This document shows positions 1 to 7,132 of a DNA stretch of 64,000 nt, in pieces. The notes below the pieces were generated by a model that saw nothing but the letters and a program-made list of their open reading frames with translations, made no database searches and was not told where the DNA came from. The position numbers were made by a program, and so were the translations under genes. The stretch lies in sequence record LC727701.1; one strand, given 5' to 3'. The number at the start of each line of letters is the position of its first letter. Within the stretch, counting starts at the first letter, position 1.

Positions 1-551
1 TGGGGGCCAAGGTGCTAATACCCCCATTAGTGCTGACCCTAATAAACCTAGCTGGAATATTGATTTTGTATGACCGACACCATTTACGAATTGCATTATC
101 CGATACCCCATACTTTTCTCCTATTTTCACAAGAGATAACAATGTAACGTCAAGGACGAGTTGTTCTTTAGATGGTCGATCAACCTTACGTCGACCTTTG
201 GCAGAACACTCAGGGTTACAGAATTTAATCAATTTATGATTCATTACCCTACCACAAGCACCACAAAGTTTTGTAGGATAGTTCTTTGGATCAATGCCCA
301 GTCGTTTCATCCATGCATGTAGTTTTAGATGCTGTGATTGAGGGAGGATCAAAAGATTATCGGGATGGTTATTGAGTTTGTTCTCATCCAAATGATGAAC
401 CTCTTCGTCATCGTAAAGAGATCTTCCGATTGTATCTTCACCGACTACACGGTGTTCGTATACCCATCCAAACATTTTGGGGTTAGCTTTTGCCTGCCGA
501 TGTTCAGGTAAATACAGAGCCCGATAACCATTAATTATTTTTTTCTTTCAT
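1..551 (-). pseudogene. HNH homing endonuclease (HNH + Cys zinc ribbon + HTH), frameshifted near 5' end, 3' end beyond window
   Basis: Hand translation: ATG at 551 gives MKEKNN-stop because of an A7 run (538-544). The shifted frame reads IINGYRALYLPEHRQAKANPKMFGWVYEHRVV..EVHHLDENKLNNHPDNL..CGAC..CNPEC..IGEKYGVSDNAIRKW and stays open to position 1. Confidence 0.8.
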
Positions 552-603
552 ATCGAACCTAGGGTTTAAAAAATAGATAGCTAGTTCGATCTATAGAACA
601 AGA

Positions 604-629
604 TAAAAGTAGCCAGCTGGCTACTTTTA
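604..629. terminator. Intrinsic terminator-like palindrome
   Basis: TAAAAGTAGCCA-GC-TGGCTACTTTTA, A/T tracts on both sides, 3' of tRNA. Confidence 0.6.
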
Positions 630-634
630 GAAAT

Positions 635-721
635 TGGCTGGTAAGGTAGGATTCGAACCTACGGTGGGCTTTCGCCAACGGATTAACAGTCCGCTCCCTG
701 CTGCCACTCGGGTACTTACCA
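635..721 (-). tRNA. tRNA-Asn(GTT), atypical long variable arm (class II, Tyr-like body)
   Basis: rc TGGTAAG..CCCGAGTGGCAGCAGGG A GCGGA-CT-GTT-AA-TCCGT TGGCGAAAGCCCACC GTAGG-TTCGAAT-CCTAC CTTACCA G CCA. Confidence 0.85.
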
Positions 722-730
722 ATGAAATCG

Positions 731-768
731 TAACAGTCACTTGCTCTACCGACTGAGCTATCACGGAA
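731..768 (-). repeat. Exact 38-bp copy of the 5' half of tRNA-Asn (2857-2894)
   Basis: taacagtcacttgctctaccgactgagctatcacggaa is identical at both positions. Confidence 0.95.
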
Positions 769-928
769 GAATTATGGCGATTTTATATTAGAGATGAGTT
801 ACTGACAACCTAATATAGATATGTAATAACTACATATTATTACAATCTGAGTATTATTTATTTCTTGTTATGACATTATGTAAATAACGTGTAGTTAATC
901 TTATTAGAAACTATCAAAGTTACTAATT

Positions 929-1441
929 CTAACTAAAACGAACCACCATTACCTCTGTACCAAAAGTATCTGCAACCCACTGGTTAAATTCTTTATCAGT
1001 GATACCGCGTAGGTTCAGATTAAATGAGGCATTGTCAACAAGAATATATTTTACAGACGATATTAATTCTTCTTTAATATCTTTTTGAATAGATGATTCC
1101 TCAGGTTGATGAATATATTTACGGAGTTGGTGTGTAATTAAACAAGAAACAATATTATCTTTAGCATTCTGGAACTTAGCCAGTACAGCCTGTTTAATTT
1201 TATCTTCTACAAATACAGCTAGACATTCGCCAGGATGACGATTAGCAAACTCAATCAATGCAGTTGTACTACCACATTGCCGACCTACAAATAATCCAAC
1301 AGTCCTGTATTCACGAATAACAATATGACCAATAGAATTAGATCGATAATTAACCCAGTTCTCATTCGTTTTTTGAATTAAAGCATCTAGGATATCTTGG
1401 TACTTTACAATAGTTCTTACAAACTGATTAGAGTTAGTCAT
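929..1441 (-). CDS. Hypothetical protein, degenerate P-loop (GRQCGST) and Walker B-like YILVD
   Basis: 170-aa ORF; motifs by inspection. Confidence 0.7.
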   Translation of the reverse strand: MTNSNQFVRTIVKYQDILDALIQKTNENWVNYRSNSIGHIVIREYRTVGLFVGRQCGSTTALIEFANRHPGECLAVFVEDKIKQAVLAKFQNAKDNIVSCLITHQLRKYIHQPEESSIQKDIKEELISSVKYILVDNASFNLNLRGITDKEFNQWVADTFGTEVMVVRFS

Positions 1442-1725
1442 AATAGACTCCTTTATTACAATGTAGCATAGATTCAGTTTTTTAACTGGAATTAAATGCC
1501 GATTTTGAAAAGGTGATAAAACCTTTTCTCATCTATAAATGAATTTATAATAGTAACAATGAATATAACCAGGGGTGGCAAACCCCTGGCATTTAGACAC
1601 ACTCTATAATAAGTTCTACCACCGAGTGTGTTTAGTGGATAGATTTAAGAATACTTTATTATAGTACTCTTACATAATATCATCGTGCCAGTATAATTAT
1701 CTAAATAGTTATAAATATTATTATT

Positions 1726-2733
1726 TTAATCAATGATTAATGGTGCTAGTTTTACCTGATAGATACCTGATAACAATTGGCTTTTCAACATATATGCTCC
1801 ACCACCAACTGGCATTTTAGATCCACCTACAATGATCATGCTATTATCCGGACCTTTAGCTATAGATGAAATATTAAGGAATCCGATACCTAGTTCAAAT
1901 GGTTCAGCCCATTTCCGGCGCCTAATATTAAAACGTTGTGCAAACATTTTAGTTACACCGCCGACATCAACAGCGTTAAGGTAATTAAAATAGTCCCCAT
2001 CTACATAACCATTACCTTGCCAGATTGTTCCTTTATCAGCAGGTATAATCATCCAAGGTGTTTGCTCCCATATTAAGGTAGTTGCATTATATCGATAAAC
2101 TTCAAGATTAGGTATGTTCTTTGTATTATCCCAACCACCAAAATGGTAAAAGTAACCATTATAAAAGAATAACTGTTGACCTGAACGAGCACCACCTGAA
2201 TAGTCTTGCCCGCTAAGCCAAGACTTACTTGATGGTTTTAATCGCATTGCGTTTACGCCAATTGGGTTAACGCATAGAATAAGATCATTACCATCTGATG
2301 CGGAGGCTGTGCCCCAAAGTGGTACGGGACCACTATATCGCTCAACCCTATTGCCTGTAGCTATATCAAAATGTTGTATAAAGTTAGATGTTCCCGTACC
2401 ACCATTACCAGCCGAGTTCCATCCAGTAATACCGCCATAAACAATAAAGTTATTCTTATGTAATGTCCCAAATCCTAAAGATACCCCTGGTAAGAATGTT
2501 CCAGAAGCAGTTGCACCTATATCGGCAAATGGCGATATGGTAAAACGTCTGAACACAGTTGCAGCTGTTTGTCCTTCAGTATGATGACCAGATCCAACAT
2601 ACAGTGTATTTCCATCCACATATGACATTGTACCAGCTAACGCTACAGGTAGATCACCTAATTTAATAATTTCATTAAATCCAACCAAGGGTAACTCTTC
2701 GCCTATATCTGGTGATAATAGTAATTCAAACAT
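1726..2733 (-). CDS. Kelch-repeat beta-propeller protein
   Basis: Repeated hhhhGG motifs (IVYGG, YHFGGWD, IIVGG) with downstream Y/W. Confidence 0.7.
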   Translation of the reverse strand: MFELLLSPDIGEELPLVGFNEIIKLGDLPVALAGTMSYVDGNTLYVGSGHHTEGQTAATVFRRFTISPFADIGATASGTFLPGVSLGFGTLHKNNFIVYGGITGWNSAGNGGTGTSNFIQHFDIATGNRVERYSGPVPLWGTASASDGNDLILCVNPIGVNAMRLKPSSKSWLSGQDYSGGARSGQQLFFYNGYFYHFGGWDNTKNIPNLEVYRYNATTLIWEQTPWMIIPADKGTIWQGNGYVDGDYFNYLNAVDVGGVTKMFAQRFNIRRRKWAEPFELGIGFLNISSIAKGPDNSMIIVGGSKMPVGGGAYMLKSQLLSGIYQVKLAPLIID

Positions 2734-2787
2734 GAGTGTGCTCTCAAGTAAATCATTTTAATTCATAAGATAACCCATGGCAACATA

Positions 2788-2811
2788 AAAGAGTAGCCGA
2801 AGCTACTCTTT
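2788..2811 (-). terminator. Intrinsic terminator after tRNA-Asn
   Basis: 10-bp stem, TTCG loop on minus strand, T tract. Confidence 0.75.
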
Positions 2812-2817
2812 AGAATA

Positions 2818-2893
<76 letters not shown>

Positions 2894-2899
2894 ATTAAA

Positions 2900-2976
2900 T
2901 GGCGCGCCCAAGGGGACTCGAACCCCTGACCACCCGCGTGACAGGCGGGTATTCTAACCAACTGAACTATGAGCGC
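2900..2976 (-). tRNA. tRNA-Asp(GTC)
   Basis: 77-nt cloverleaf, CCCGC-CT-GTC-AC-GCGGG, encoded CCA. Confidence 0.95.
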
Positions 2977-3028
2977 AAACGTATGGACATGACTTCCTAC
3001 ATAGTATTACATAACCAGTAATATTTTA

Positions 3029-3948: not shown

Positions 3949-4025
3949 TGGTGGGCCCAGCAGGACTTGAACCTGCGACCAAGCGATTATGAGTCGCCTG
4001 CTCTAACCAACTGAGCTATAGGCCC
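3949..4025 (-). tRNA. tRNA(CAT), most likely tRNA-Ile2 (lysidine, reads AUA) rather than Met
   Basis: GAGCAGGCGACTCATAATCGCTTGGTCGC matches the enterobacterial ileX-type body as recalled. Confidence 0.85.
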
Positions 4026-5248: not shown

Positions 5249-7132
5249 TTATTCTTCAATACCAATGACCGTATTGCGTTCATTGGTGTTCTCTACGGTT
5301 GAACCACTTGGGAAGCTACTGACAGATGCTTGCATTAGTTTCAACATGTCGATAGCAAATACTCGATATGTAGATTCAACCTTAGCGTCGTCGTACGATG
5401 CATGAATGTTAAGAATGGCATTATCGGCCCTTTTAGCCAGCAGATATACATCCTCAAGAGCATCTTTATCTTTAATAGTGGATAGCTTATGTTTGTAGAT
5501 ATCCCCATTGACAGATAGGTCAGGATACTGGGCTACCCAAGTGTCCGCAATAGTCTTAGTGTTGTTAGACAGAACGTCAATGATAACGTTAGCTGCTTCC
5601 ACAATACCGGTAGCATCAAGCAACTTAATCTTAGCACCAGCATTATCTGGCCATTTGGGTTCTTGGAAGTTTGTCTTTACATTGGGTTTCCATTCAGCCA
5701 GAAGAGTAGCGACTTTCTTAGGGTCTTGCCAATCATTCCCTTTGAACAGATTAACCACGGGGGCTAGTATCTTACTGTTCTCATCCAGAACTTTCTGGTT
5801 GTGACGATCAGCTTTAGCTACAGCATTAGTGATATTGGCTTTTGCGGTCTTAGGATCATTAGACGCGAACGTCTCGTAACTCGATACTTTTACTTCGCCG
5901 GTTTTAAGCTTTGCTTCTGCCACCCATTTGGCATCACCATAGGTACTTTTCAGTGTAGCAATAGCTTTCTTCTTTTTATCAAGATTGATCTCAGGGCCAG
6001 AGTCGAAGATACTCTTAATGGTGTCGATAAGACCTTCATTTGAGACTTGTATAAAACCGGGAGTATTAATGATGGACTTCTCTACATACCCGCCACGAAT
6101 AACTCGATTTATAAAACCATTAAGACCACTACCAGTTTCGGCCATATCTTTCATGATTTCTATATTTGTTTCACCAGCACTCTGGGCATTGTATAAATAA
6201 TAAGAACCATCTTTAAATTTTAGTATAATCCAGTCATCTCCAGTTAGATATGAATCAATATTACTATCATTCATACTTTGGTATTTAATGAATTCTGGAT
6301 TAGTACTTAGTACTTCTTCAATAAACTCTTCTAATGCCGCAGAATTATTAATAGCATCAACAGGTGGAATTTCACCATCAATGGGTTCAGTAGTTGGACC
6401 AGTAACAATGGCAGGTAACGGATCCTCCTCTACAATAACAGTTTCTTCCACTGGTAGAGCACCACATGAAGCATCAATTAGTTTATTAAAACTACTAATG
6501 ATCTCACCAAGTGCTACAAGAACTGCTGGCTGTTCAACTTGTTCAACTTTAGCAATACCAGTTTCTGTAAATTCTTCAGTGATTCGGTTATAAACTTCTA
6601 CTAGTTGGTTAGTAAGTTCTGCTACTTTTGGCAGAGTCTGCTTAGACAGAGGTTCAACTACAGTTGTATCTGCTTCAACAAAAATAGAATCATCTTCTTC
6701 TAAACGGCTAGTATTAGCTGAGCCAGCTGTGAAGTTATAAGGCATATCTTGAATTACTTCATTAATTTCAGATGCCTCCATATCTTCATTTAGACGACCA
6801 CTATAAGTACGCATCATACCTTCTGCTTCTTTAATAGTGGAATGCGCTAAGCGTCCCCAATCACCACGCATAATACCGCGCTCGGTAAGACCGCGTGCAG
6901 CTGAACCAAGATCAATAGGTTCTTCAATAAATGATTGTTCTTCAACCCACTCTTCATTACTGTAACATTCTTTTAGAATGGTTTTAAATTTAGTACTAAA
7001 GGGTTGTAGAATCTTTTTATCTACTTGTTCAACATTTGTTTTAAAGTGTTCTAGACTTGGTGTAGCTTTTGAAGATACTTTTTCAGTACCGCTATATAGC
7101 GTACGGTTTAGGAAGTTTAGCATTTTATTCAT
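5249..7132 (-). CDS. Virion head/ejection protein (phiKZ gp303-like)
   Basis: 627 aa; S-x-E|G prohead-protease-type site (VSNE|GLID); position next to nrdB. Confidence 0.65.
   Translation of the reverse strand: MNKMLNFLNRTLYSGTEKVSSKATPSLEHFKTNVEQVDKKILQPFSTKFKTILKECYSNEEWVEEQSFIEEPIDLGSAARGLTERGIMRGDWGRLAHSTIKEAEGMMRTYSGRLNEDMEASEINEVIQDMPYNFTAGSANTSRLEEDDSIFVEADTTVVEPLSKQTLPKVAELTNQLVEVYNRITEEFTETGIAKVEQVEQPAVLVALGEIISSFNKLIDASCGALPVEETVIVEEDPLPAIVTGPTTEPIDGEIPPVDAINNSAALEEFIEEVLSTNPEFIKYQSMNDSNIDSYLTGDDWIILKFKDGSYYLYNAQSAGETNIEIMKDMAETGSGLNGFINRVIRGGYVEKSIINTPGFIQVSNEGLIDTIKSIFDSGPEINLDKKKKAIATLKSTYGDAKWVAEAKLKTGEVKVSSYETFASNDPKTAKANITNAVAKADRHNQKVLDENSKILAPVVNLFKGNDWQDPKKVATLLAEWKPNVKTNFQEPKWPDNAGAKIKLLDATGIVEAANVIIDVLSNNTKTIADTWVAQYPDLSVNGDIYKHKLSTIKDKDALEDVYLLAKRADNAILNIHASYDDAKVESTYRVFAIDMLKLMQASVSSFPSGSTVENTNERNTVIGIEE

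Follow-up and report, generated by a model that had tools for sequence, protein, structure and literature searches.

We describe here a tRNA gene with a GUU anticodon and a long variable arm, located at positions 635-721 (- strand) of a 64,000-nt stretch of DNA (hereafter, the window), which is predicted to encode a working tRNA-Asn and which we propose is carried as a nuclease-immune replacement within a homing cassette, a reading to which we assign a probability of roughly 0.6. The gene is accompanied by an HNH endonuclease gene, and both lie in an insertion that interrupts a canonical tRNA-Asn gene. The window derives from the phiKZ-type phage NK1 (LC727701): its bases 1-3000 correspond to NK1 positions 1-3000 with 100% identity, and by BLAST they are 99.3% identical to phiKZ (NC_004629, 268,924-271,923). 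All 55 records matched by these 3000 bases are P. aeruginosa phiKZ-like jumbo phages.

ARAGORN reported six tRNA genes on the - strand. One is the 87-nt tRNA-Asn(gtt) at 635-721; another, canonical and 76 nt long, is a tRNA-Asn(gtt) at 2818-2893 (-), also recognized by Rfam and hereafter called the site-2 gene. The 87-nt sequence belongs to the Rfam tRNA family (RF00005; score 53.7 bits, gathering score 29; E 9e-10), and its minimum-energy fold computed with ViennaRNA is a five-armed cloverleaf that agrees with the structure we had drawn. The acceptor stem comprises 7 bp (UGGUAAG/CUUACCA) closed by U1-A72, followed by discriminator base G73 and an encoded CCA; the D arm has a 3-bp stem and an 11-nt loop; the anticodon loop is CUGUUAA; and the T arm is normal. 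The variable region of 14 nt forms a GGC-GAAA-GCC hairpin, with a 3-bp stem and a GAAA loop, plus four unpaired bases, as in class II tRNAs. The bacterial tRNA-Asn identity set is thus represented by GUU and G73, together with U1-A72, the GatCAB determinant in hosts lacking AsnRS, whereas the features of a class I body (a 4-5-nt variable loop, a 4-bp D stem and a D loop free of supernumerary bases) are not found in this molecule.

The surroundings of the gene define an insertion with precise boundaries. Directly 5' of the long-arm tRNA, the segment at 731-767 (-) matches the initial 37 nt of the intact 2818-2893 gene exactly and represents the remnant, positions 1-37, of a canonical tRNA-Asn gene that is intact in relatives; it ends with ...CUGUUA in the anticodon loop. 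A 9-nt linker, CGATTTCAT, at 722-730 (-) forms the 5' edge of the cassette, as indicated by the breakpoint at 731 in BLAST alignments with cassette-free relatives; phage Churi has an identical linker at its other Asn site. The long-arm tRNA is followed immediately on its 3' side by a terminator-like hairpin (604-629, -), identified by scanning and sequence inspection, which resembles the native hairpin that follows the canonical tRNA-Asn at site 2. The remainder of the insertion within the window is the HNH endonuclease gene, of the phiKZ gp296 type (1-544, -), identified by Pfam, translation and annotation, the last three codons of which run off the start of the window. Past window position 1, the NK1 and phiKZ records continue for 43 nt and then read AUCACUGGG...GGAGCCA, which is the missing 3' half of the canonical tRNA-Asn, lying beyond gp296 in phiKZ and, for NK1, where the record ends. 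At the same site (site 1), KEN19, PA_ZH1 and Churi each carry one uninterrupted 76-nt tRNA-Asn without an HNH gene. The insertion is therefore 774 nt in length, consisting of linker, long-arm tRNA, terminator and HNH gene, with no target duplication, and occurs at anticodon-loop position 37/38 of the canonical tRNA-Asn (or 36/37, an A being shared).

About half of the phiKZ-like genomes retain the split gene in its intact form. Close relatives accordingly differ in the precise presence or absence of the insertion at this conserved site, the kind of polymorphism by which a homing cassette is recognized. The canonical gene at site 1 has, in our estimation, probably been reduced to two dead halves and functionally replaced. 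A preliminary description of this DNA had placed the long-arm gene alongside a canonical copy at 2818; that copy does exist there, but the cassette context and the second, split canonical gene had been missed. A weak sigma-70-like promoter match (10/12 positions in a consensus scan) just upstream of the 5' remnant, at 780-808 (-), would drive the remnant and the long-arm tRNA if it has promoter function; sigma-70-like matches in that scan yielded no more sites than shuffles predict.

The HNH gene product gp296 contains a homing-type nuclease domain (Pfam HNH_3, E 7.8e-10), and the beginning of its gene is disrupted. As annotated, the ORF begins at 475, a point 25 residues inside the conserved protein, while the conserved N-terminal frame reaches 544 and is out of frame with an ATG at 549-551 through one extra A in an A7 run at 538-544, a change common to NK1, phiKZ and 124.01. 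In phiHQ and Psa21 the start is intact (MKEKIINGY..., MEKIKQKVINGY...). Searching with gp296 (tblastn) revealed close relatives in Pseudomonas jumbo phages only. Those of phiHQ (88% amino acid identity) and of the P. syringae Tepukevirus Psa21 (63%) lie directly 3' of a long-arm GUU tRNA, with a class I tRNA 5' fragment upstream of that tRNA in both phages and, in phiHQ, a 3' fragment downstream as well. The Psa21 long-arm tRNA keeps the acceptor stem and shows compensatory changes in its variable and T stems. Partial matches to the C-terminal part of gp296 were also found in three viral contigs, at most a few hundred bases from a long-arm GUU tRNA. Phage tRNA arrays often include HNH genes in any case. 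Two further phage HNH genes were considered as gp296 homologues and rejected: that adjoining the long-arm tRNA of Pseudomonas phage Milchi is unrelated and of a different HNH type, and that of Klebsiella phage N1M2 gives no match to gp296.

The state of the nuclease gene parallels the presence of its presumed target. A canonical tRNA-Asn gene was not found in the whole genomes of phiHQ or Psa21, where the long-arm gene is the sole tRNA-Asn gene and the HNH start is intact; in the phiKZ clade, the frameshifted HNH start coexists with a canonical tRNA-Asn. This is the pattern that would arise were an active nuclease incompatible with the presence of its target, in a correlation that rests on three lineages.

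Among phiKZ-clade phages, nine carry the cassette at site 1 (NK1, Brmt, phiKZ, 6B, 9Ps-7B, 9-Ps-8B, 124.01, 2PS and 14Ps5-6), and a diverged copy with 82-88% identity occupies site 1 in the ~300-kb phages phiLBG22, phiHQ, PA1C and BRkr. In eight others (Churi, OMKO1, fMGyn-Pae01, HUST_1, T2P, U1B, U5 and phi9_PA9) the long-arm tRNA is located at site 2, next to tRNA-Asp, with the same 5' remnant and linker and without the HNH gene or the 3' half, whereas both Asn sites are canonical in approximately 25 genomes. Site-2 tRNA-Asn and tRNA-Asp are cleanly deleted from 124.01, 2PS and 14Ps5-6; the whole genome of 124.01 gives five tRNA matches, of which the long-arm gene is the only tRNA-Asn. Because the hairpin after the long-arm tRNA resembles that at site 2, a deletion between these similar terminators could have yielded the Churi form. 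The Churi-type state requires a second event beyond insertion of the cassette.

From these features we propose the following cycle. The 774-nt element would be a selfish cassette with, in the phiKZ lineage, the long-arm tRNA as its cargo. During co-infection, the HNH enzyme would cut the canonical tRNA-Asn genes of cassette-free phages near the region coding for the anticodon loop, and repair from cassette-bearing genomes would copy in both the nuclease and the long-arm tRNA-Asn. The DNA common to the long-arm gene and the canonical target amounts to only 11 nt around the anticodon (GACTGTTAATC), so that the incoming gene is proposed to restore tRNA-Asn function while being immune to the nuclease. 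Such an arrangement would amount to "drive plus rescue", in which decoding capacity is kept while the target site is destroyed. The states found in relatives fit a homing cycle: empty sites; an intact HNH gene (the phiHQ clade and Psa21); a frameshifted one (phiKZ and NK1); and loss of the HNH gene with retention of the tRNA (the Churi type, at the second Asn site). The site-2 tRNA-Asn of NK1 and phiKZ has the presumed target sequence, and an active nuclease should cut the genome that encodes it; the HNH frameshift may explain the survival of this target, an explanation that is post hoc and draws on three lineages.

Long-arm tRNAs with this anticodon extend well beyond the phiKZ-like phages. 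BLAST searches with the 87-nt gene retrieved genes annotated as tRNA-Asn and 80-87 nt long from hundreds of Tequintavirus records, as well as from Serratia phage CBH8, Phapecoctavirus and Pseudomonas phage Milchi. A degenerate pattern describing a GUU loop, a GAAA-looped arm and a T arm, in that order, matched 67 contigs of IMG/VR and, in a cellular set containing one genome for each of 185,579 species, six contigs, all from MAGs; judged from these counts, which depend on a single motif-restricted pattern, long-arm GUU tRNAs are a family found almost only in phages. Among 58 distinct members, G73 is present in 56, U1-A72 in 37 and G1-C72 in 20, and these acceptor-end features mirror those of the class I tRNA-Asn of the same contigs. 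The commonest variable-region length is 15 nt. Rough profiles class 27 of the bodies as Ser-like, 24 as Tyr-like, three as Leu-like and six as class I Asn-like, a heterogeneity suggesting that the family may have several origins or that the arm may be gained and lost.

The most serious alternative to the replacement cassette, and the main idea of the preliminary description, is that the long arm serves mainly for protection at the RNA level. The molecule would then be a backup or decoy tRNA-Asn against host defences that target tRNAs (anticodon nucleases, or systems like PARIS AriB or Septu/PtuAB), and its linkage to the HNH gene would be incidental. In many unrelated viral contigs the long-arm Asn tRNA directly adjoins a class I Asn tRNA, suggesting non-redundant roles, and long-arm versions of other class I isotypes are present in the same phages; moreover, phage tRNAs are known to rescue infection from tRNA nucleases, and tRNA-Asn is a target of AriB (10.1101/2025.02.04.636281). 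The anticodon loop and the U36-A-A-U-C stretch are nonetheless unchanged, so that nucleases reading the loop should still cut the long-arm molecule, about half of the phiKZ-clade genomes do without it altogether, and no P. aeruginosa nuclease directed at tRNA-Asn came to light in this analysis. Rescue of phage T5 from PARIS by tRNA-Asn, which might be taken as functional proof, was set aside as such since T5's own tRNA-Asn, the one featured in the AriB work, is a class I molecule of 78 nt. We consider RNA-level protection unlikely as the main role of the arm, although it could operate together with the cassette model.

A second alternative concerns the amino acid carried, and its appraisal depends on the relationship of the long-arm tRNA to other isotypes. 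Comparisons of the body were made with home-made profile HMMs constructed from collected phage class II tRNAs with the anticodon masked. Scores were 29.3 bits for TyrII, 25.8 for SerII, 14.1 for class I Asn and 9.7 for LeuII, the gap between the Tyr-like and Ser-like profiles being only ~3 bits. The nearest neighbour without a GUU anticodon is a phage tRNA-Tyr, and the matches in E. coli are to tRNA-Tyr only and weak (E 0.7); a Tyr-like label for the scaffold is modestly supported. Like bacterial tRNA-Tyr, the molecule has a 3-bp D stem in a CCCGAG...GGG-type D arm, a short 3-bp variable stem followed by three or four unpaired bases, and an anticodon just one base removed (GUU versus GUA); unlike it, it has G73 rather than A73, U1-A72 rather than G1-C72, and U36 rather than A36. 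Relative to bacterial tRNA-Tyr, it looks like the product of an anticodon shift and a re-tuned acceptor end. Derivation from the phage's own tRNA-Tyr was rejected as a specific source, as the D arm of the phiHQ tRNA-Tyr is different and Leu-like.

Bacterial GatCAB recognizes U1-A72 and excludes tRNAs with a supernumerary D-loop base (PMC2330236, PMC1635274, PMC2811023), and one of these sources, citing Akochy 2004, describes P. aeruginosa as using a non-discriminating AspRS with GatCAB as an Asp-amidotransferase (PMC2330236). Read base by base, the long-arm GUU tRNAs of Pseudomonas phages (the phiKZ group, phiHQ, Psa21 and Milchi) have U1-A72, whereas those of phages infecting AsnRS-bearing enterobacteria have G1-C72. 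The combination of U1-A72, G73 and GUU in the Pseudomonas-phage tRNAs points to Asn identity, and the long-arm tRNA most likely reads AAC and AAU and carries asparagine. In P. aeruginosa it would be charged with Asp by the non-discriminating AspRS, through GUU and G73, and then amidated by GatCAB, through U1-A72. As class II synthetases, AspRS and AsnRS come up to the tRNA from the side of the variable loop. The tail of GatB has likewise been modelled beside the variable loop (PMC2811023), and the long arm and enlarged D loop, lying where both would approach, could hinder either enzyme.

Were the long-arm tRNA instead a mischarging device, SerRS (through the long arm, G73, G2-C71 and C11-G24) or TyrRS would place Ser or Tyr at Asn codons. 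The masked body does score as Tyr-like or Ser-like, G73 and G2-C71 are shared with tRNA-Ser, and there is a precedent in V-arm tRNAs that have class I anticodons and receive their amino acid from a class II-tRNA synthetase (PMC4033280). Nevertheless, the discriminator and first pair, taken together, are of Asn type rather than Tyr, Leu or Ser type: phage tRNA-Tyr has A73 in 20 of 20 cases and G1-C72 in 17 of 20, tRNA-Leu has A73 in 30 of 30, and U1-A72, invariant in the subfamily and occurring here in phages of GatCAB-requiring hosts, is found in none of 39 phage tRNA-Ser, whose variable region is mostly 18-19 nt as opposed to the 14 nt and 3-bp stem of the long-arm tRNA. In phiHQ, Psa21 and 124.01, furthermore, mischarging would affect the sole tRNA-Asn gene. 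We regard it as improbable. The preliminary description was correct in recognizing a tRNA-Asn with GUU, U1-A72 and G73 on a Tyr-like class II body (as ARAGORN, Rfam, the fold and the masked profiles confirm, with SerII close behind), and its statement that P. aeruginosa makes Asn-tRNA through AspRS and GatCAB, with U1-A72 as determinant, agrees with the literature cited above (PMC2330236, PMC2811023, PMC1635274); its suggestion of mischarging with Tyr or Ser is disfavoured by an acceptor end of Asn type.

The pairing of the long-arm tRNA is conserved well beyond chance. In a covariation set of 12 relatives, comprising the subfamily with a Tyr-like D arm, standard pairs occupy all 274 of 274 pair cells, and 13 of the 23 pairs, including two of the three in the variable arm, show compensatory changes on both sides, a count matched by none of 500 shuffles and compared with one to four in slid controls. 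U1-A72 and G73 are invariant (12 of 12). The preliminary description, which saw in this gene a purposeful second tRNA-Asn, had named a variable arm without covariation as grounds for abandoning that view; the arm does covary, and the view withstands that check.

Evidence for expression came from RNA sequencing runs in the form of Logan contigs rather than raw reads, of which only CCA ends with a poly-T tail were used. Runs from at least four studies contain the long-arm tRNA region. Six records from a nanopore cDNA run terminate at the CCA end (634/635) and then pass into poly-T, a signature also seen at the 3' ends of tRNA-Asp (2900) and tRNA-Leu (4432); this evidence, which is indirect, suggests a processed 3' end at the CCA. 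RNA-run contigs also cover 731-863. Depth of coverage was discarded as a measure of expression level, as host tRNA-Asn cross-maps through the shared T arm. In a Grad-seq study, phiKZ tRNAs occurred in ribosomal fractions during infection, with the long-arm species not singled out (PMC8545117).

The frameshift in the adjoining HNH gene, and the blindness of standard RNA-seq to charging, might together suggest an inert tRNA-like relic dragged along by the nuclease gene. Such a decaying passenger is very hard to reconcile with perfect pairing and many compensatory changes across phages whose HNH proteins are only 63% identical, with invariant identity nucleotides, with an RNA 3' end at the CCA, or with retention of the tRNA after loss of the HNH gene in eight phages, and we give it little credence.

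We dismiss the idea of a 774-nt intron spliced out to restore the canonical tRNA, to which the classic tRNA intron position (37/38, exactly in the anticodon loop) and the retention of both gene halves in phiKZ and NK1 might otherwise point, for a group I intron in particular and more generally: searches with the Rfam intron families gave nothing at E values up to 1; the insert finishes in A or T, where a group I intron would have G; the gene halves have decayed or been lost (phiHQ has no anticodon loop left, Churi lacks the 3' half and its remnant has a mutated anticodon reading UUU, and the 3' half in phiKZ and NK1 has T at T-loop position 57); and contigs from the RNA runs keep genome order all the way from the 3' remnant, across the HNH gene, to 760, with no joint between the halves.

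Textbook accounts restrict long variable arms to Leu, Ser, bacterial Tyr and Sec tRNAs. In the literature searched, in which coverage of subscription journals was thin, we found no description of a long-arm phage tRNA-Asn, and the phiKZ-type gene is named there only as tRNA-Asn. Phage tRNAs and free-standing homing cassettes are both known kinds of element; the variant found here, a long-arm tRNA-Asn in such a cassette, is undescribed in that literature. A conserved, expressed long-arm tRNA-Asn in the model jumbo phage phiKZ raises the question of how the arm can be accommodated by a class IIb synthetase and by GatCAB, for which natural isogenic variants with, without, or with only the long-arm tRNA offer a tractable system. 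The cassette further suggests a rule for selfish elements: where a homing nuclease destroys a tRNA gene, it brings along the lost function on a different scaffold. As to annotation, the "tRNA-Asn" genes of which phiKZ-type therapeutic phages have two are not equivalent, and one of them marks a mobile, polymorphic locus.

We also advance, tentatively and as something less than probable, a broader generalization: that recasting class I isoacceptors (Asn, Thr, Lys, Ile, His, Trp, Cys and Met) on long-arm bodies, with the acceptor identity of the isotype retained, is routine among phages, and that such a scaffold swap would hide the tRNA gene from a sequence-specific enemy. If so, the swap would be the RNA-gene counterpart of synonymous recoding, the enemy evaded would be either a homing endonuclease at the DNA level (the phiKZ cassette, as "gene drive with rescue") or a host tRNase at the RNA level, and the restriction of long arms to Leu, Ser, Tyr and Sec tRNAs would be a rule that fails in the virosphere.

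Long variable arms on tRNAs with the anticodon of a class I isotype are familiar from allo-tRNAs. They are likewise a feature of nematode nev-tRNAs, which keep Leu or Ser identity elements and mischarge, placing for example Leu at Gly codons (PMC4033280). The long-arm phage tRNA does not retain the identity elements of a source class II isotype in this way; unlike in nev-tRNAs, its acceptor end (U1-A72, G73) matches the isotype of its anticodon, and correct charging would therefore be expected. Comparison may also be made with the rescue tRNAs of T5, of which tRNA-Lys, -Thr and -Asn replace host tRNAs cut by PARIS AriB (10.1101/2025.02.04.636281) and tRNA-Tyr acts against retron-Eco7 and Septu (PMC11555353, PMC13096335). 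Like these, the long-arm tRNA is a phage isoacceptor with a sequence unlike that of the host; in the T5 variants a few bases close to the cut site are changed, whereas the long-arm tRNA differs in architecture.

The organization of the cassette has its nearest parallels among tRNA-associated nuclease genes. In Klebsiella phage N1M2, a tRNA-Asn 5' fragment, an HNH ORF and a tRNA-Asn that is diverged but intact are neighbours; as in the phiKZ-type cassette, a tRNA-Asn gene is split by an HNH gene and an intact replacement adjoins, but the N1M2 HNH is unrelated, the order is HNH and then tRNA, and the replacement is of class I. In intronless homing, T4 SegB, a GIY-YIG homing enzyme encoded among tRNA genes, drives their preferential inheritance (PMC2330249); the association of SegB with tRNAs, and tRNA gene amplification against Septu, have been described (PMC13096335), and the HNH genes hegA/C/D sit among the tRNA genes of T5. 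The phiKZ-type locus shares with the T4 and T5 systems a nuclease gene placed among phage tRNA genes, presence/absence polymorphism in close relatives and co-inheritance of flanking tRNA genes. Its nuclease is of the HNH_3 type as opposed to the GIY-YIG type of SegB, and its homing is proposed from sequence. Unlike those systems, the cassette of NK1 and phiKZ interrupts a tRNA gene at the anticodon loop and supplies its own tRNA, differently built and of the same decoding specificity.

The start of gp296, the HNH gene that accompanies the long-variable-arm tRNA-Asn in the cassette inserted in a canonical (class I) tRNA-Asn gene, is out of frame (window 538-551): an A7 run there contains one A too many. 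This frameshift is common to every gp296 copy checked in the phiKZ clade, and frame comparison showed the HNH start to be intact in phiHQ and Psa21, two Pseudomonas jumbo phages bearing the same tRNA-HNH pair. At the second Asn site, tRNA-Asp, the adjacent canonical tRNA-Asn and the hairpin of the latter have been cleanly deleted from phages 124.01, 2PS and 14Ps5-6; the deletion point in 124.01 lies at 5380-5400 of its record (L085).

Other arrangements of tRNA and HNH sequences occur in further phages. Klebsiella phage N1M2 carries, on the minus strand (L090 1466-2045), a row comprising the 5' fragment of a host-like tRNA-Asn, an HNH ORF unrelated to gp296, and a class I tRNA-Asn that is both intact and diverged and whose acceptor and D arm are like those of the long-arm tRNA of contig L059, minus the long arm itself. 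A row in Pseudomonas phage Milchi (L008 80-659) consists of a canonical tRNA-Asn, an HNH gene of a type different from gp296, and a long-arm tRNA-Asn with a Leu-like body and U1-A72. In Psa21, the stretch from tRNA-Pro to the cassette (L084 720-1320) contains several fragments that resemble tRNAs, together with a doubtful tRNA-Gly(acc); these may represent further wreckage of split tRNA genes.

Two signals in the RNA runs, short high-depth contigs with a G>A change at window 2852 and chimeric joints of 663 to 742 (within region 646-760 of the window), apparently derive from the tRNA-Asn of the host, P. aeruginosa, whose T arm is the same as that of the long-arm tRNA and whose 5' half is largely in common with the canonical phage copy.

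Elsewhere in the window, the homologues of gp298 and gp297 are separated by an intergenic space (1450-1740) that includes a strong GC hairpin near 1571-1590; a Grad-seq study reports that an RNA of about 100 nt, present in abundance, comes from this space in phiKZ (PMC8545117). The tRNA with a CAT anticodon at 3949-4025 is annotated as tRNA-Met in phiKZ and KEN19 but as tRNA-Ile in Churi, and may be a lysidine-type tRNA-Ile.

Viral contigs retrieved in searching for the Asn tRNA also encode tRNAs of other class I isotypes with long variable arms: Thr (L012, L050), Lys (L062, L020), Ile (L032), His (L065), Trp (L013), Cys and Met, the contigs named being examples among others. Each of these non-Asn tRNAs has a discriminator base typical for its own isotype. 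The tRNA-Asn of phage T5 (L076 5953-6525) is a class I form of 78 nt, overlapped by ORF T5.069, whereas many other Tequintaviruses, such as SHSML-45 (L005 576-658), have an 83-nt long-arm form in its place. Polymorphism of the Asn locus thus extends to T5-like phages.
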